A program made the position numbers and the translations under genes. A DNA stretch of 64,000 nucleotides from Hemiscyllium ocellatum (taxonomy: Eukaryota), in the NCBI RefSeq assembly GCF_020745735.1, contig NC_083407.1, forward strand, positions 68,377,857 to 68,441,856. The letters run 5' to 3'. The notes under the pieces were generated by a model. The model saw only the letters and a program-made list of their open reading frames with translations. It was not told the origin of the DNA and did not search any database. Of this stretch, positions 3,705 to 22,312 are shown piece by piece. Numbering within the stretch: position 1 is the stretch's first letter; every line of letters starts with the position of its first letter.

Positions 3705-4658
3705 ATGAGTTCATATTTTGTTAATCCATTCTACTCCAAGTACAAACCAGGAGAAGCTCTGAGTCCCACTTACTACGACTGCCGGTTTCCACAAGACGTG
3801 ACCAGCAGACACGCTGTCGTCTATGGTCCCAGCAGCGGCGCAAGCTTCCAGCACCCAGCTCAAGTTCAAGATTTTTACCATCATGGGACATCTGCACTTC
3901 CTAATGCTGGCTTTCAACAGAATCCTTGTGGAATTACGTGTCATGGTGACCCCTCTAAATTTTACGGATACGATAACTTACAAAGACAGCAAATTTTTAC
4001 GACACAGCAAGAGGCCGATCTGGTACAATATCCTGACTGTAAATCGTCTAGCAGTAATATTGGCGAAGAACCAGAACACTTAAATCAGAACTCGTCTCCT
4101 ACTCAAATGTTTCCCTGGATGAGACCTCAAGGTTGGATATATTAGAATTAGCTTCCATCTCACGTTTTACTGCACAGTTATATCGCCAACGTGTTTTAAC
4201 GCGGTCTGTAATAGTCTTGTCTGCTTTTATAGCAACACTTTCTTTGTATGGCATTACCGTTCAAAAGCAGGCTTGTTGTTGTTCTTGTTGCTAGTCTGTC
4301 ATGATTTGCTTGTGTGCAATTTTCCAATATTTACTGTCTCTTGTGATTCTCGTGTTGTTTAGCAGCGCCCGGCAGACGCAGAGGAAGACAAACTTACAGC
4401 CGATTCCAAACCCTGGAGCTGGAAAAGGAATTTCTGTTCAATCCGTATCTGACACGAAAGCGAAGGATCGAGGTTTCACATGCTCTGGGACTGACAGAGA
4501 GGCAGGTGAAGATTTGGTTTCAAAATAGGAGAATGAAGTGGAAAAAGGAAAACAACAAGGACAAATTTCCAAGCTCTCGGAACGACGAGGAGGAGGAAGA
4601 GGTCAAAAAAGAACAGGAAGAGCCTGAGCAGGAGACAACAGAAAAAGAGACCAAGTAA
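3705..4658 (+). CDS. HOXD8: Homeobox protein Hox-D8; exon 1 3705-4131, exon 2 4363-4658 (alternative acceptor 4366); about 240 aa
   Basis: [14 protein letters not shown] start; FPWMRPQ hexapeptide; GT donor 4132; TAG/CAG acceptor; PG8 homeodomain [60 protein letters not shown] followed by NKDKFP and an acidic tail; TAA 4656-4658. The exon 2 coding frame is missing from the ORF track. Confidence 0.96.
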
Positions 4659-5049
4659 CTTTACCCCCTTTGGCCTCTAAGCAAAACGTCATTCAGTTTG
4701 TCCAAACTGCACTGTTAAACAGTGGTGAACAGAATGAATCTCCGGCACATTGATGGCAAGGTTAATGTAAACTGTCCACCTGTTTTTTTTAAAGTTCTTT
4801 AGAGCCTTAATTCGACATTATATCTCATGAATTCTCTGTGCATCATTTTGAACTTTTCAATCACACCTTGACAGATCAGCCATCATATAGAAATGTGCGG
4901 CTTCCCTTATTATAAGTGGCAAGTGGCAAAATCACAGAAGAAATCGCCATTTTGAATAAAGATTTTATTGCTTTTTAATACGTCGATAATATGAGATGGT
5001 ATCGTGATTGATTTAGTTTGTTGATTTTATTTAGCATTTTGTGATTATA

Positions 5050-5070
5050 CCCAACAACATGAACTGCCTA
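5050..5070 (+). promoter_or_regulatory. miR-196 target site in the HoxD8 3' UTR
   Basis: CCCAACAACATGAACTGCCTA is complementary to miR-196a (UAGGUAGUUUCAUGUUGUUGGG) with one G:U pair and a 1-nt bulge; same site type as in HOXB8. Confidence 0.9.
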
Positions 5071-5673
5071 ATAGAATGAATAATTCGGAATGTATTGCGA
5101 ACACACTTAATGATAGAGAAAAAAATGTGCACTTACGATGTGTCTTAATTACTGTGCGTGTGAAATAATTGGTGGTGTATTGCGGCTGGAAATTCTCAAC
5201 CATTACTTATCTCTGATACGCATATTATAAACACAAGCAAAAAAAATGTCAAGGTATTCCGCAGCAATAGTCACTTTTTAAGATGCTCGAATGTGATTAA
5301 ATTAATAAATGTTGATTAAATTTAATTGTGTACTTGTTTCATTTTCCGACGAGTATTCCAAAGCAACAAAAATGCTGTAAAGGAAAATCAATCTGGTCAT
5401 TTCGAGACCATCAGCAGAGATCACTGGTTTACCCTCTTGCCAGTTTTCTGCGGCTGCTTCTAGGCTGCTACTTTCCAGTGAAATCAGATGCACTTTATTT
5501 TTGTTTCTGTGTCTCTGTAGCCACAAGGTTCAGGCCTGTCATACAGCAGCGCGGCAGTTACATGGACGGAAAAGCCTGAAGATGGCGTAATGTAGTTATA
5601 AAAGTTAATGATATCGTCGATGATTAGAATATTAGTTTATCTATGCCCCAAGTTAAAAGTCTTTCCAGTGACT

Positions 5674-6918
5674 ATTGGTTAATGAGATCACATGCCTGGC
5701 TTATGTGTGGCTAAGCCGACGCTGTAAAAGTTAGTATTGGTGTTAAACTGCGGTCTACTGTACGCGTGTATCAGCAAATCTCGTAAAACCGACAATAAAA
5801 GTTCTAACACTACAAATCACTCAACAAACTGTGGACTTCTGGCTCCATTTTATTTTTCTCTGGTTTGAAGGCTGGGGAAGAAAGCAACATCTTTGGTTGC
5901 CTAATAACCTTCCAACATTTCGCGAATTTTTTTCCTTTATCAGCAATTACGCCAATTTAAATGTCAATAATATCAGTGGGCACGTTGCTTATAAACTTCA
6001 ACCTTAAGAATCGGGAATTTCGAATCTCCACCTTTGCGCAGGGAGATGAACAGCATGGCCAATCTGAAACAATAAAGACAAATTGATAAGAACAAACAGG
6101 AAACAATTAGAGGGGAAAATGCAAACGTTGTGTTTCAAATGTGAACAAACAATTAAAAGACCTTGTTTATTTTTAAAACTAAAAATAGCACTCTGCATTT
6201 TGTGGCGAGTTCGAGAATCCACTGAGATAATACAAACATCTCTGATTTTCGAAACAACTTCAGACTTGTAATTGAATGGAATTCTCTGTGTTAATAACTC
6301 AAAGTCATACGACCGCAATATCCTCACTGTATCAGGTATAGTCAGATATGAAGCAACAATTAATTAATTGAAGATAGAGATTTGAGCAGTTGGGGAATCC
6401 CAGTTTTGGAGCTGTATATTGGTAATTTTACACATTTGAATGTTAATTGCATTATGTTTTATTTTAATGCAAATAAAATTTGTATCCTATTTTAAATAGC
6501 AAACTAGCTATCCGATTGCAATATAGCAATCATTTTACAGAATAAATCGACTCTAAATAAATTGGAACAGACTTATTTTTAATTGCATTTTCGAACAGGA
6601 GAGGATCATATTTGTCCAAAATTAAGTATTTCTTGACTGTCTTTCACATATTACCAGGATTGTTTTAAATGTGTGCATGATTTTTCTACGATGTTCAATT
6701 TCATCAAAAAACCACAAATTTTGAAGTTCAACAAATCAGTGTGAAACAGGCTATATATGTATATTTTTAAATGCTATTCTGCATTTGCTCCAATTGCAAA
6801 TTGAATCATCAAATCCCCATACCAGCGATCAGGAAGGGATTGTACAATGACGGTAGAACGGGTCTTATCAAGTATTTAGATTAGCAAAGAAGAATCGCAA
6901 GTTTTCACTGAACGAATT
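5674..6918 (+). pseudogene. Putative decayed HoxD7 (promoter, 5' UTR, ATG>GTG at 5831, donor 6336, homeobox fragments 6827-6918)
   Basis: 5737-5833 closely follows the HOXB7-type 5' UTR (AATCTCGTAAAACCGACA.TAAAA...CTACAAATCA...CAAA.T-ATG) as recalled. 6873-6899 reads YLD*QRRIA versus YLTRRRRIE, and 6907-6918 reads TERI versus TERQI. Lies in the collinear position. Confidence 0.7.
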
Positions 6919-8184
6919 GTGCACACAATGGCGAGGCTTGTGGGTGGAATTAATACTTTGAAACGGGCATTGCTTCTGAATTGTTGCTTACAATTCCCGG
7001 TCAATTTGGGTCTCGAATAAAATCGCTATCGAAATTCCTCCCCCATCCAGTCTCCAAACCCAGAAAGACTTTTCCAGTTGTCCTGTTGAAAGTTTTATTA
7101 ATAATGCATGTTATTTTGATGTAACCTTGATAATAGTCTTATCATTTTCATAAATTAAAAATGAGAACTCGTCCCGATTCTGGTGATACCGTTTTGGATT
7201 TTCACCGTAAGATCACTTCAAAACACCGCAGCAAAGACAGCCTCGTGCTAGCCCTTCTCTAGAGTTAAATCAGCGGTAAGCATGGGATAATAGAGAAACT
7301 TGGAAAGCAAATATCTAGCAGACATGCTTTCCTTCTAATGCTCGAAGTTCCCGTGCATGCAACACGGTGAAACCGTAATTACCGAACCCGCTCACGGACA
7401 TTGAAGGAAAAATATACCGAACCAACTGATTCAAATGCTTGCATTCACGCCTAATCTGTTAACGCAGCGCCGAAGCTATTTTAGCCGATTAAGCCAAATC
7501 TTATGAAGCACGAGAATTTATAATGCCCATTTTCTCCCCACAGTGGACACACGAGGACTTTAATGCCGTGCTCCATGTCATTCGGCCCCTACATATGCAT
7601 CTATTTACTGTTCTGTTCTGACCTGTGCAAAATGCATCGTACAAAGCTTCGAATAAGATACAACTTTCCTTGAGATTTTGATTGTTATTGGAAGGAAGGA
7701 CGGAAGGCGCCGCAGTTTTGTTGCGTATTTTACAGACGCTTTTGCTTAGTTTATTTTGCTTTCTACTTTTAATTAGATCTTATTGAATGGAATGAGAAAG
7801 TCGGGAGGAAACGAAAATAAGTTTTCTAATACGTAACTGGCAGCAGTATATATTCTTGGTATTACCGCTTTATTATGTTTTTGACGAGATTTAATTTCAA
7901 AAATGCCCATGTCTTCACTTGATACATCTATTGGATGTATTAAAGAAGTAGCGATTAACAAACAAATTGTAACGATTTGTTTGCTGCACTATAGAATGCG
8001 CCCCGCATTGGTTGATATTCCACTTGATGTTGTCGCGGTATTTCCGCTGATATAGTTAGTTAAGACGTTCGTTACAATACATATTGTAACAAATAGCTGT
8101 AGCAAAGAACTCGTTAAAGGGAACATGGCGCTTGCTAGCTATACTTGTGAAATCCGCAAGGAATTGCTGCGAATTCCTTTTTGT

Positions 8185-8290
8185 TTGAAGAAAATTTACA
8201 ACTTTGTAATGGACCTTTTACGACGGAGCCCGTGATCCTATTGGCTGACATTGGTCATGTGAATCTAGTAACTGCGTTCATGGCCTTTTC
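8185..8290 (+). promoter_or_regulatory. Conserved Hox8/7-6 intergenic element (resembles the four-cluster sequence); probable promoter of a non-coding first exon ending at donor 8658
   Basis: TTTACAACTTTGTAATGGACCTTTTACGAC, inverted CCAAT at 8240, E-box CATGTG at 8256; GG|GTAAGT donor at 8658. Confidence 0.65.
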
Positions 8291-11200
8291 ATGATTTCCC
8301 TTGTGAATATTTCACTGCATTCCGCTGCTAACTCGTCTCAAATCGTCTTTTCTGTCAGTATCTCCTCTTGCCTGCTTTTGTCGTTGGTATTTGACGCCAG
8401 CTGCTTGCAAAAAAAGGAGACTTTCTGCTGTATTCGCAGTGTCCAGTCCTTTTCCGTACAACTGTGAGGAAGTCATTCGTCTCATGCTGGGATTCAGCAA
8501 CCTAATCACTCTCACAGAGCTCTGACGTCTGTTTACAGTCTTCCATTTACCCTTCAATTTTCGCCTTACCTTTTTCAAGTTATTTTATTGATCGAAAAAG
8601 TAGAAATGGAATACAATATCAGGCTGGTGACTGTATTGGGGAAGCGCCCTAACCCGGGTAAGTGCTATGCTGTTTTAGCTCTGCTGTTGCAAATCATATT
8701 GCTGTAAATGGAAAGCCGGAAAAAGGCGTTTGTTTCATTCGCTGGATTCTGGGGAACTGTTTCTGAGATGGTGCGCTATTGAAGCTAAATGACCCCAGCA
8801 CGGGTTTGAAAACGGTCCGAACGAAGCAGGTCCAGGTGGTCACTGGAATTCATATGGCGGCTGTGGCGCAGATTAATTAAATATTTATTTCCCGCAATAG
8901 AACGGAGTGCTATGATTCGTGGCTGTCTTTGAAATGAAGGCTTCGCCACACACAGCTGATATGTTTTCATATGATCCAGAGCAGAGATGAATCAGAATGT
9001 GTAGCGTTGTAGTAGGATAATTAGTAGTGCTATTGCAAATTGCGCGACTTGGGTTTTTTTTTCCGGGAGCTAATGATTGGCGGTTTCAGTTTGTTTCTGT
9101 CTGCTATTTTGCATACAAGGATATGTGTTGAACGTCATCTGTAATAAGAATTAGGTGCAGAGATGAATGATATGCATTGCCTTAATCCTAATAATTCCGT
9201 GCAGCAATCACAGAAGCGATCAGAATTTTGGAGATGTGTTTAACCAGCATTTTAAATGATGTCTGACCACGTGACGGAACTTTGCACAAATGAGTGATAC
9301 TCTTCCAATAAGTGCCCTGCAATAGATAGCGGACTGTGCTCTCAATATACTTGTAATGAACAGGGGATCAGGAAAAATTTCTAACTGCGTCTATATTTGC
9401 AATGTTTAAAATATTAGCAGCTCAACCATCCGGTGATTAATTTCCCGCAAGTTGTCCCCAAATTGGATAGCACATTTTATTAAAACTGTAGGGTCTTCAT
9501 GCGGGAAATGTTTTTAGTTCGGAACCAACAGCTCCAGTCCATGTTAAGTGAATTCACAATGCAAAACAGAATGATCACCAAAAATCGTGGAATTCCTTTA
9601 CTTTGTTGTGGAAGTTTTTCTCATTATTAGCGATTTAACTGCAAAATCTTGCTGCAGACGTATACCTAGAAAGGTGGAAGGGGGTGGTTGTGTGTGCGAG
9701 ATATTGTCATCAGGAGATGAGCTGATCATATATCATTTCTGCAATTTCCCTCGGCAATTATTTGTATGTATTTTTTCCAATTATTAAATATTCGGAGAGG
9801 ATTGCTTAAATTGTTTTTGACTGTACATCAAAATTGCACTCATTTGAAATGTATGCTTATATTCATAATTTGAAAATTGATTTGTCTTTCAATCTTCTTT
9901 TAGTGAAAACGGATTAAACGACTATAGTTTGACCATCCATTTTGTGCATAGTTATAGCGATCTTGATTTGTTGTGCATCTGTCGCCTATTTGTATATGAA
10001 AATAGTATTAAACACCGAACAAAATGTCTGTCTATCTATCTAACGTATGGACCAACAGACATATTGTGAAAGTGAAAGCGAGGCTGTTCAAAATGAAGCT
10101 AGAATCAAAGAGTGTGCATCGATAGCGTAACATGCGCAATTTCATCATAGTCTTTATAACGTTGTGAATGTTTCTATATTAAGTATTGACGTTTTTTAGT
10201 CAAAACTCACAAACAGCAATGTACGTGCACTCGAATTCTATCAGTTTTGAAGTTTTAGTATTATTTTAGCTATTGGCAAAGCACTTGCAGGTTTACCCTA
10301 ATTTTCAAGCAATATTTGACAGTAATTCTGTTCATAATACCTTTTGTTTAATTCTCAATGCATCGCCCATCTTCATTCCAATTTGTCAGGCAATTATTTT
10401 ACAGACTTTGAAAATCAAGCATTATTTGCCTCCATTAAATAATTAAATGAGATAAGGTTGTTCAGGTATAATTTTCGTTAAAATAAAGCTGATTTTTCGG
10501 AGTTACGTGACTATTACACTCTGCACTTTTTACAATGTATGAACAGACTGAAAAGTGATTTCGCAGATTTTTCTTAATCATTCGTAATTTAGCATGAACA
10601 CATGGAAAAAGAAAACTGAGCAACAGTAATGTCACTGTAATTAAAATTACCAGAAAGCGGATATTTGTTATTCAGTTCATTTTCTAGTTTTAGAATCGAA
10701 TTATTTAATTTTTGTTATTATGCGTCATGTCGTCGTGGTTTTGCTAAACCGACTAAAGTACGCAACAGGCACCGTTGTATCTGTCTCTGTGTGTATACCT
10801 ATGTGTGTGTGAATATCTGCCTATCTGTTCGCTTGTATGTGTAATTCATACTAAGTGTCCAATTGTGCATTTAGAAACGCTACCCGAAAAAGTTTTGCTC
10901 ATATTACATCTTCGGTACCAGCCATGCTCAAAAATAATTTCCAAATGATTTCAGCATAATAGCAAAATATTAGAATCAATAATTTCAATGAAACATGTTT
11001 CATTTAACTTCTGCAACAAAAGGTGGTCTGATTCCCAATGCCAGTTCGCATTAAACCATTTATTGCACTGCTTTTATATTGGCATCTCGTTGTGAAAGTA
11101 AGTAAATCTTAATGCAAACACTTCGCACAGATTCGAGGGAAATGGTCTATTGCAATCTCAAAGACAATTCGATCCTCGTAGTTTTGGCAAACCAACGAAT

Positions 11201-12313
11201 TTCCAGAACGCGATCTTCTAAATTTTGTCATAAGGGAGACGCACTGGAAAATGACAATCAACAAAAATGAATTAGTATGTGATGCACGCAATAATTTATA
11301 CTTTCCATTGTCAGAGCATAATTCACAATCGTGCCTGGTGAAAGGGTAAAATATTTGACTGTTGGGTATTCTATTTCAAAAGTTTCAAGAGTACAAATAT
11401 TCGGTAAAGTAGAAAAAAAATCGTTGTAGTCAGCAGCAAAAAGCCATTCTATTCCATAACGTGTACTGTAAGAACGGCCTGATTTGTTAGTGCAGGACAA
11501 AGACAGTATTTCTGTTACCGACTGTCACATGGCTGCCGCAGCCTTAGATTTACGAGCTTTAGACAGAGTCAGTTGGACAGTGTCGCAACTCTGTTCTTCG
11601 AACAGAATTGCAAGGGTGCACAAATCAAACTTCACAAAGGATAAATAAAACCATCCCCATAGTCTGGCATTTTATTTAAAATGCACTTGTTAAAATATTA
11701 TATTTTGACTTCTTAAGCTATAAATTGTAATCCATGATTGATCTGGAATCAATGCACTTTTAATGAAGGCCTATGCAGTTCCACCTTGAAACCGGGGCCT
11801 AGAATAAATACCTGGGGTCTTTGTGGGTTGATGTTGTATCCTGGCATGGATTGCACGGGCTGTGATTACAAACTACAATAATATTTCCATTGAAACTTGC
11901 TTAGACTTCAATTAATTGGTAATACTTTAGCCCTTCAATTCTTAAAAGCTCGGGTGTAATAAGTAAAAGTAACTCAATTCTCCAGCGCTGCAAGTTGTCA
12001 GGGTAAATAACATCTAAATGTTCCTGCGATAGAAAGGAAATCAAATTCTGTACGGTTTTGTATGAGAAACTAGTATGTGTGGGTGGGGCGGTCAAAACAT
12101 AAACCCGAAGAACCCTATTTTGTTGCTAACCGATGCACTGACTAATCTGTAGGAACACCCTTTTTTTGCCAAGAAAAAGAAACAAAGCATTGATGTACTC
12201 CACCTGTTTGAAAGATTACTGCCATTCTGAGCGGATCTTTGTAAGAAGTCCTGCAAGGCCCGCATTATCACGGTCGATGTTTGACACCTTTGTCCTTCAT
12301 TATCAACTCCTTT

Positions 12314-13152
12314 ACAAATCGCAATCTAAAATTTATACGCAGCCTATTCGTCAAACCGAAAAAGAAAAATCTTGATTACAAATACTGCATTTATTTCTCG
12401 GTTCGTTTCCTTGCCGTTCTGGCTGGTTCAGATTGTTTGGATCTGCGTGGCAGAGAACGATAACAGAGCAAAATTGGAGCCTACACGATATCATTTGGAA
12501 ATCTGTATATATTTACCCGAAGGCCATCTTTCCACAATTAAATTTGTTTTAATTCCATCAGCACCTACACAGGATTATGCATCAGGTATCAGAGTTTTAG
12601 ATATATGCCTCCATCTAAGTAAAACATAGATTGTACAAGGGACAACTGTAGTAACGTTCACGAGGAATTCCGCGGCGAAAATAGAAATAAACCCTATACC
12701 ACGCCCGCTTAGCTTCTTAGTCGATTCTGGTTGGTTTCAGGGTCGACTTAACCAGTCACAAAATAAAATACCATGTTGGTCTGTTTCTTTTTAAAAAAAA
12801 GATCCCCAATCATAACAGACAACACACAATTATCCAGAAACAGGAATTTCATGGGCAAATTGTGGGATTGCCTGGACAAACTAATGGGAAACTTTGTGAA
12901 TGCGCAGTGTATGTAGATATCAACGTAATGTGGAAATAGCTGTGCGCTGTGTTCTACGAAAACGACATTGTAATCGTTATAGGTGTTGAAACCCGGGCTG
13001 TGTGTGTAAGTGAGGGAAGGCTGCCTCTGTATCCTATACAGGGATAAGCTGTCTTTCAGGAAAACGAACTTTCCCTAAATTGTTGCCTAAAAGGAAGAGA
13101 AGTTAAACATCCTAAACCTTGGACTAAAAATCAGAGTCGGATATCGAGAAGA
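12314..13152 (+). pseudogene. Putative decayed HoxD6 (start remnant 12337-12358; linker and homeobox remnant 12997-13152)
   Basis: ACAAATC...ACGCAGCCTATTCGTCAAACCG resembles ACAAATC...ATGAGTTCCTATTTCGTCAACCCG (MSSYFVNP). 12997-13024 reads AVCVSEG..GC versus HoxA6 AVYGSHGRRGR. 13060-13146 reads ENELSLNCCLKGR---EVKHPKPWTKNQSRIS versus [32 protein letters not shown]. Confidence 0.7.
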
Positions 13153-13675
13153 TTTACTTGTTATTTATTTCCATTTATGCAGTTCGCCACAAGCAAATCA
13201 TTCTTTTCAACCAACATCAAGCTAAAGGATTAAATACATGATTAATACGAAATAAACGTTTTAAATTGAATTGAATTTAAAACGTTAATTGTGTTACAAA
13301 ATATTTTGAATTATTAAGGTGTAATGCTGAATAACAAACGGATCAGATCAACGTCTGTAGTTTCTTAATATTGTACCTATCGTCAGCACAAACCAATTCC
13401 ACAAATTACTTTACATATGCATTATACACAAACCTATACACTTACAAACTTACTAAACAGGAAATTTTTACTCGCATACACATTTTGTGTCTGTGTTCCT
13501 GTATATGTCGTCAGTTAAATAAAATCGAATTTCAGGTAACAGAAATCAGCTTTCATACCCAAGGTTTAACAGGGTTTTAAGTGTGAACCATTTTACAAAT
13601 AAACCTATATGGAAAATAGGTTGCAAAGTGTGAACCTATATAAAGTGCTGATGTGAATCTGGCTTTCCTCATGTT

Positions 13676-13694
13676 TGCCAGCAGGGGGCGCTAC
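13676..13694 (+). promoter_or_regulatory. CTCF site at the Hox5|6 boundary position
   Basis: TGCCAGCAGGGGGCGCTAC is a consensus CTCF motif about 250 bp upstream of the HoxD5 ATG. Confidence 0.85.
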
Positions 13695-13729
13695 AGGATC
13701 ATGCTGGCTAAATCATAGCAAGTATTCTC

Positions 13730-13830
13730 ACTGCATGAATTACCCCCAGGGTCAGGCACAAGAATTTACGACTGGTCAACAAAAGCACGTGATCTAAACT
13801 TGTGCCCCATATTTGGTTGCATACGTAGAA
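13730..13830 (+). promoter_or_regulatory. Conserved paralogue-5 proximal promoter
   Basis: GAATTACC...AATTTACGACTGGTCAACAAAAGCACGTGAT block typical of Hox5 promoters; E-box 13786-13791; CArG-type CCATATTTGG 13807-13816. Confidence 0.75.
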
Positions 13831-13937
13831 AGCAGAGAAATGACATGTGCCTTTTATTTCCATATTTCATTATATATCGCTCGGTCTAGTGCCGAATAAA
13901 CGTCTAAGAACCACAAATCAAAACCCGTTAAAGGCAG

Positions 13938-15060
<1,123 letters not shown>

Positions 15061-22230: not shown

Positions 22231-22312
22231 GTCGTCTATATATACCCTGTAGAACCGAATTTGTGTGATGTTTCGGTCACAGATTCGTTTCTAGGGGAGT
22301 CTATGGTCGATG
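22231..22312 (+). ncRNA. MIR10B: pre-miR-10 (miR-10b type); 5p mature 22243-22265, 3p about 22279-22300
   Basis: TACCCTGTAGAACCGAATTTGTG is exactly miR-10b-5p; complementary arm ACAGATTCGTTTCTAGGGGAGT; canonical position 5' of Hox4. Confidence 0.97.

Follow-up and report, generated by a model that had tools for sequence, protein, structure and literature searches.

A probable regulatory skeleton left after the loss of Hoxd7 and Hoxd6 in the HoxD cluster of the shark Hemiscyllium ocellatum

The locus and the sequences compared

The sequence discussed here is the spacer between Hoxd8 and Hoxd5 of Hemiscyllium ocellatum, which lies in a stretch of 64,000 nucleotides (contig NC_083407.1, positions 68,377,857 to 68,441,856 of the forward strand) that we refer to as the window and number from its first letter. 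Hoxd7 and Hoxd6, which would stand in this spacer, have been lost, and we put at about three in four the probability that what remains is the regulatory skeleton left by that loss, with the functional parts kept by purifying selection. Under this proposal only those parts that were still working would persist once the two genes had gone. The parts in question are a relic of the Hoxd7 leader (psi7), a distal promoter with a putative leader exon, and a CTCF motif directly 5' of the Hoxd5 promoter.

The open reading frames of the window and their translations give Hox genes 8, 5, 4, 3, 2 and 1 in this order on the + strand, and protein searches name the two genes that flank the spacer Hox-D8 and Hox-D5. 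The D5 product is closest to that of the whale shark (93%), and for D8 238 of 239 residues are identical to the Chiloscyllium/Rhincodon protein. Because of this gene order and the Hox-D8 and Hox-D5 matches, we identify the window as the HoxD cluster of a shark, running from D8 to D1 on the + strand. The Hoxd8 homeobox exon, with a translation that matches D8 proteins, lies at 4365-4658 (+) and finishes with the stop codon at 4658. D5 begins with its ATG at 13938, and the interval studied, 4659-13937, is exactly the D8-D5 spacer.

For comparison we used the HoxD clusters of whale shark (L001), the electric ray Narcine (L002) and gar (L005), the HoxB clusters of whale shark (L003) and chimaera (L004), and from the other clusters tortoise HoxA (L006) and chimaera HoxC (L007).

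Conservation across the spacer

Block-wise identities were taken from a three-way HoxD alignment, in which the window was compared with whale shark and with ray. The D8 3' flank (4659-5736) has identities of 0.94 to whale shark and 0.77 to ray, the psi7 relic (5737-5833) 0.95 and 0.84, the promoter core (8172-8322) 0.99 and 0.90, the putative leader exon (8323-8657) 0.93 and 0.76, and the block with the CTCF site and D5 promoter (13646-13937) 0.95 and 0.88. For the spacer at 5915-8031 the figures are 0.79 and 0.45, and at 8963-13645 they are 0.82 and 0.45. Between shark and ray, spacer without constraint can no longer be aligned, and constraint is limited to four islands. As the psi7 relic, the promoter and the CTCF/D5 block have 84-90% shark-ray identity against 45% in the spacer that flanks them, we take these pieces to be held by purifying selection and not to reflect slow neutral decay.

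The distal promoter

The block conserved among elasmobranchs in the HoxD alignment at 8032-8962 (+) covers a promoter core, a putative leader exon and the start of the putative intron. The core, at 8172-8322 (+), is what we call a D2-type distal Hox promoter, and has homologues in HoxB, HoxA, HoxC and gar HoxD. In whale shark HoxB the match is at L003 16634-16769, 1.82 kb 3' of B7 (E 5e-16), and in chimaera HoxB at L004 14055-14202, 1.93 kb 3' of B7 and 4.6 kb 5' of B6 (E 4e-17). The tortoise HoxA match is at L006 13753-13900, 2.17 kb 3' of A7 (E 9e-7). In chimaera HoxC it lies between C8 and C6 at L007 17003-17161, 5.9 kb 3' of C8, with a score of 60 against a shuffle maximum of 18, and in gar HoxD at L005 13145-13353, 2.2 kb 3' of D8, with 78% identity and an E-value of 7e-40. 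All of these matches are collinear and in identical orientation.

The core contains AATTTACAAC, TTTACGAC, ATTGG (a CCAAT box), GGTCATGTGA, ATGATTTCCC and the TATA-like AATATTT. In our alignment of the elements (A2) the invariant features are AATTTACAAC, TTTA(C/T)GA, the CCAAT box, GGTCATGTG, ATGATTTCCC and a TATA-like box, the last being AATATTT or GTATATT after the invariant ATGATTTCCC and recognised from its sequence alone.

With regard to function, the best guide is the D2 promoter of the mouse HoxA cluster. Transcription from D2 starts about 2.3 kb 3' of Hoxa7, in a conserved region of about 500 bp that has a 160-bp core and a TATA box, and the long transcripts, spliced over 4.6 kb and across several genes, reach Hoxa5, Hoxa6 and Hoxa3 (Coulombe et al. 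2010, PMC2868907). The element in the window is like mouse D2 in having about 500 bp conserved with a core of about 160 bp, in its type of position about 2 kb 3' of Hox7, in its TATA-like box, and in having a leader exon, putative in the shark, before an intron of several kb. It differs in that Hox7 and Hox6 are gone from the shark cluster, so that the element stands 3.5 kb 3' of D8 and its likely targets are D5, D4 and D3. On the basis of position and homology, 8172-8322 is most likely the HoxD paralogue of D2 and would, if it acts in the same way, be an active promoter with spliced products.

The putative non-coding leader exon is at 8335-8657 (+), its 3' limit being given by a consensus 5' splice site, GTAAGT at 8658-8663 (+), preceded by GG, and its 5' end being an estimate. 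Whale shark and electric ray share the GGTAAGT of the window (8657-8663) without a change (alignment A3), and in gar there is a donor, GGGTAAGT, 343 bp after the core anchor as against 365 bp in the window. The core and the exon (about 8335 to 8657) would thus be the HoxD copy of an ancient promoter and leader exon just 3' of Hox7, which most likely feeds Hoxd3, Hoxd4 and Hoxd5. It is relevant that in the stingray Hypanus the gene model for a Hoxd3-like product of 444 amino acids starts 5379 bp 5' of D5, within the leader-exon region.

There is an ATG at 8606 (+), 52 nt before the donor, that is kept in the shark, whale shark and ray. The Hypanus Hoxd3-like model may start at the equivalent of 8606, in which case its product would be an isoform with an N-terminal extension, or the ATG would open an upstream reading frame. 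A second Hypanus product, metaxin-like, of 289 amino acids and with Tom37/GST domains, is modelled from the first position of the Hoxd3-like product, which suggests read-through or chimeric transcripts that run from the distal promoter out of the cluster. Within the putative intron a TAAT-rich block at 8828-8962 (+), containing ATTAATTAAATATTTAT (alignment A3) and having 69% identity to ray, is a possible homeodomain-binding enhancer, auto- or cross-regulatory, in view of its TAAT cores (GCAGATTAATTAAATATTTATTTCC).

Each of the four clusters has a D2-type element, even HoxC and HoxD, which are without Hox7. Its presence in gar HoxD and chimaera HoxC leads us to treat it as retained from before the gnathostome crown, and the homologies thus make the promoter element older than the split of bony and cartilaginous fishes. 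An element of this kind in each of the four clusters suggests that long multi-gene Hox transcripts arose before the clusters were duplicated. Three paralogous non-coding regions conserved across Hox clusters have been described (Matsunami et al. 2010, as cited in PMC3595034), and on that account of them the promoter element resembles these regions in that each of the four clusters has retained it since the two rounds of genome duplication.

The CTCF site and the Hoxd5 promoter

The CTCF core motif CCAGCAGGGGGCGCT is at 13678-13692 (+), 246 bp 5' of the D5 ATG. It is an exact match to the consensus CCASYAGRKGGCRSY and the sole match in the window at one mismatch or fewer, where 0.08 would be expected by chance. 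CTCF sites pair by a convergent rule, and this is the basis for calling the motif 3'-facing, as it is oriented to the 3' end of the cluster. In the whale shark 14 of the 15 positions are retained. The Hoxd5 proximal promoter and 5' untranslated region (5'UTR), containing TTTACGAC and CACGTGAT, follow at 13693-13937 (+), within the conserved block 13646-13937.

In mouse the first 3'-facing CTCF sites are at Hoxa5|6, Hoxc5|6 and Hoxd4|8, and the HoxD site, CBS1, acts as the Hox timer's first barrier (PMC8837555, PMC10335938). The shark motif shares with the mammalian CBS1 and 5|6 sites a consensus on the transcribed strand that is 3'-facing, and a position as the most 3' site of the cluster directly 5' of paralogue 5. 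The difference is that mammals do not have D5, and their CBS1 lies between d8 and d4; the shark has retained D5 and the predicted site is therefore in the 5|6 position. We suggest that 13678-13692 is the first 3'-facing CTCF site and corresponds to the mouse boundaries at Hoxa5|6, Hoxc5|6 and Hoxd4|8. If bound by CTCF, it would insulate an early D1-D5 domain from D8 and beyond.

The shark Hoxd5 promoter at 13693-13937 comes directly after the CTCF motif, and this leads to an idea, put forward only as such, that the mouse feature reported by Rekaik et al. might be a promoter orphaned by the loss of Hoxd5, with the shark promoter as its counterpart.

The Hoxd7 leader relic

In a blastn comparison with whale shark HoxB, 5769-5820 matches the sequence directly 5' of the B7 start codon. 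Local alignment widens the match to 5737-5833 (+) against B7 from -94 to +3, with a score of 32 where shuffled sequences give 11.3 +/- 1.5. The same segment scores 27 against chimaera B7 and 29 against the tortoise A7 5'UTR, whereas with the 5' regions of 15 other Hox genes the score never exceeds 13, which makes the match specific to paralogue 7. With the B7 or A7 leader as query, 5737-5833 is the unique best match on both strands of the whole 64 kb. The relic is also retained in whale shark HoxD and in ray HoxD, the latter with a score of 28 against a shuffle maximum of 17.

A six-way alignment (A4) has two invariant motifs in the relic, TCGTAAAACCGACA and ACAAATCAC, and the similarity terminates precisely at the position of the start codon, 5831-5833. 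The codon itself is ATG in A7 and B7, but in the three elasmobranch HoxD copies it is GTG (the window), GTA and GAA. The relic is on the + strand 1.17 kb 3' of the D8 stop, the equivalent distance for B7 being 1.54-1.58 kb, and is collinear in that it lies 3' of Hox8 and 5' of the Hox7-Hox6 element.

Could these similarities be due to chance or to convergent promoter motifs, making the layout illusory? In blastn the relic reaches only modest E-values (0.005, 0.24 and 0.07), and Hox promoters do have short motifs in common, such as TTTACGAC and CACGTGA. However, the local-alignment z-score is about 13, the match is specific to one paralogue group, its end-point at the start codon is identical in three comparators, its position and strand are collinear, the relic was recovered independently from ray HoxD, and for the promoter element E-values go down to 7e-40. 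Given these alignment statistics we exclude an explanation by chance, which has next to no probability left. On the evidence of the alignments we regard 5737-5833 as a true molecular fossil of the Hoxd7 leader that has lost its start codon, and not as a decayed coding gene.

The relic lies close to the distal limit of the conserved D8 3' flank (4659-5914, +), which is probably 3' untranslated region (3'UTR) and has poly(A) signals and a miR-196-type site. Within the relic, at 5795-5800 (+), there is an AATAAA in alignment A4 that is present in all three elasmobranch HoxD copies, where A7 and B7 have ACTGAA, and it is a candidate distal poly(A) signal for Hoxd8. Because of this gained AATAAA, the U/GU-rich run that follows it, and the contiguity of the relic with the conserved D8 flank, we propose tentatively, and at somewhat less than even odds, that the old leader now serves as the distal end or poly(A) region of Hoxd8 transcripts. 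In a same-species run guessed to be RNA, 27% of the sampled words of 5330-5815 were found, which is a weak indication.

The competing explanation is that the psi7 block is a control element bound by transcription factors, with TCGTAAAACCGACA and ACAAATCAC as Cdx/Hox-type sites that act on Hoxd8 or on the distal promoter, and that this element always merely overlapped the Hox7 leader and is no part of the 3' end of Hoxd8. The clustering of columns invariant among A7, B7 and the three HoxD copies into two short motifs fits this, as does the higher identity of the block to ray (0.84) than of the surrounding D8 flank (0.70-0.77). The block was, however, not found in chimaera HoxC or gar HoxD, both of which keep the distal promoter, and the HoxD-specific AATAAA and the contiguity with the D8 flank favour use at a 3' end. 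We consider a control element unlikely on balance, but of the alternatives it is the one to be taken most seriously.

The D8 3' flank also has CCCAACAACATGAACTGCCTAA at about 5050-5071 (+), which matches the 3' flank of chimaera B8 (L004 8812-8834) at 95.7%. We take it to be the near-perfect miR-196 complementary site of HOXB8, here minus one base.

The search for D7 and D6 coding sequence

No recognisable disabled D7 frame, with N-terminal motif, hexapeptide or homeobox, was found when the gap was searched at DNA and protein level. In tblastn the exons of D8, D5, D4, D3, D2 and D1 from the window gave nothing in the gap below E 0.3, and with the exon proteins of B6 and B7 the lowest E-value was 0.03, for a hit on the wrong strand. 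At DNA level B7 exon 1 against 5834-6400 and the B7 homeobox exon against 5834-8040 both scored at the level of shuffled sequence. The segment 5915-8031, which includes the proposed psi7 body at 5915-6918, evolves at the background rate and has no trace of D7 coding sequence.

In the case of D6, A6 and B6 have in common a block of 128 bp just 5' of their start codons (score 62), which in 8621-13677 gives scores of 14-15, the level of shuffles, and the Hox6 exons of A6 and B6 also give nothing above that level in 8621-13677, so that no psi6 of any kind was found there. Two candidates were considered and rejected. The first, 12156-12181, is a match of 26 bp to B6 exon 1 that scores 18 against a shuffle maximum of 17, but it consists of low-complexity T and A runs and is lost at the orthologous place in whale shark. 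The second, a homeobox-like frame at 13425-13535 with an E-value of 0.65, lies in low-complexity sequence rich in CA, and in that part of the gap the homeobox exon of B6 does no better than shuffles. From these searches it appears that the coding sequence of D7 and the whole of D6 have left nothing recognisable.

The distances are also informative. From the psi7 start position to the promoter element is 2.3 kb here as against 3.75-4.05 kb in intact clusters, which is 1.4-1.7 kb below the intact Hox7 unit, and from the element to D5 is 5.6 kb, where in intact clusters the element is 4.4-4.6 kb 5' of Hox6 alone, so that an intact Hox6 would take up about 4.5 kb of spacer and its own length besides. 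The short spacing means that sequence has been lost, and decay by point mutation only is unsupported.

This bears on an earlier note on this DNA, which held that D7 and D6 had died in place by point decay rather than deletion, leaving coding traces, and that either the decay was very slow or the loss was late and possibly independent in cartilaginous fishes. There are two things to be said for such a history: shark and ray HoxD do contain a fossil of paralogue 7, which was undetected in gar HoxD, and sharks evolve slowly, the spacer being 79-82% identical to that of whale shark even where it is unconstrained. However, the coding traces do not materialise, as the comparisons with B7 exon 1 and homeobox, with B6 and A6 and with the window's own exons are at chance level (tblastn E-values of B6/B7 being at least 0.03), the A6/B6 5' block is missing, the two candidate segments fail, and the spacing is too short. 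Slow neutral decay does not fit either, since the neutral spacer is unalignable between shark and ray (0.45) and nothing neutral from before the crown could therefore have survived. The pieces that do survive are under constraint and so provide no clock for the timing of the loss, which leaves a late or independent loss without support. We regard decay in place as very improbable.

The layout proposed in the earlier note, 8 - psi7 - conserved element - psi6 - CTCF - 5, fares better. Four of its five items are present in the order and orientation given, these being D8, the psi7 leader, the element and the CTCF site before D5, and by their collinear, same-strand matches they do mirror HoxA and HoxB; psi6 has to be removed. 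The element, which had been placed at 8185-8290, is real and larger, extending over 8172-8322 with homologues in HoxA, HoxB, HoxC and gar HoxD, and the CTCF site at 13678-13692 has the exact consensus. The psi7 ghost is reduced to its leader of 97 bases at 5737-5833, the body being indistinguishable in rate from background. What had been concluded from the layout nevertheless fails, because the survivors are non-coding, comprising a block of 5'UTR, a promoter and its putative leader exon, and the CTCF motif.

Significance of the surviving pieces

Several points weigh against the interpretation of the spacer as a functional skeleton. The HoxD comparison covers whale shark, electric ray and gar only. 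No psi7-type relic was found in the gar HoxD or chimaera HoxC spacers, so that any function of the relic is not universal. In the electric ray the CTCF motif is down to 12 of 15 positions, and its occupancy is a prediction. The equation with D2 is by position and by homology to the tortoise A7-A6 element. Finally, look-ups in runs guessed to be RNA gave partial word shares only, which fall short of proving transcription.

It has to be considered whether the stem cartilaginous fishes had a functional Hoxd7 and lost it independently of bony vertebrates. If true, this would explain why the leader is present in elasmobranch HoxD only, and not in gar HoxD or chimaera HoxC, which have also lost Hox7. 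We think it improbable. In a weaker version the relic may be the first direct sequence evidence of HoxD7, kept because it was recruited as an end for Hoxd8 transcripts. The dating of the D6 and D7 losses is unrevised by these findings.

As an observation the psi7 leader relic appears to be new; the promoter and the CTCF site are of known kinds. Pufferfishes have a psi-HoxA7 and sharks have psi-Hox14 genes, and in both cases recognisable disabled reading frames are kept. The relic is like these in being the remains of a lost member at the collinear position, and unlike them in being only about 97 bp of 5'UTR that would survive through constraint. It also differs from the Matsunami four-cluster regions, as these are described in PMC3595034, in being retained in HoxD only. 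As a physical trace of a gene missing from every living jawed vertebrate it is rare, and in combination with the other pieces gives a concrete map of what selection spares when Hox genes go: a multi-gene promoter, an insulator site and a recycled leader.

Other features of the window

Outside the spacer, a mir-10 precursor is present at 22236-22307 (+) (Rfam RF00104, 69.5 bits), 1.36 kb 5' of the D4 start codon, which is the position expected for mir-10b, 5' of D4.

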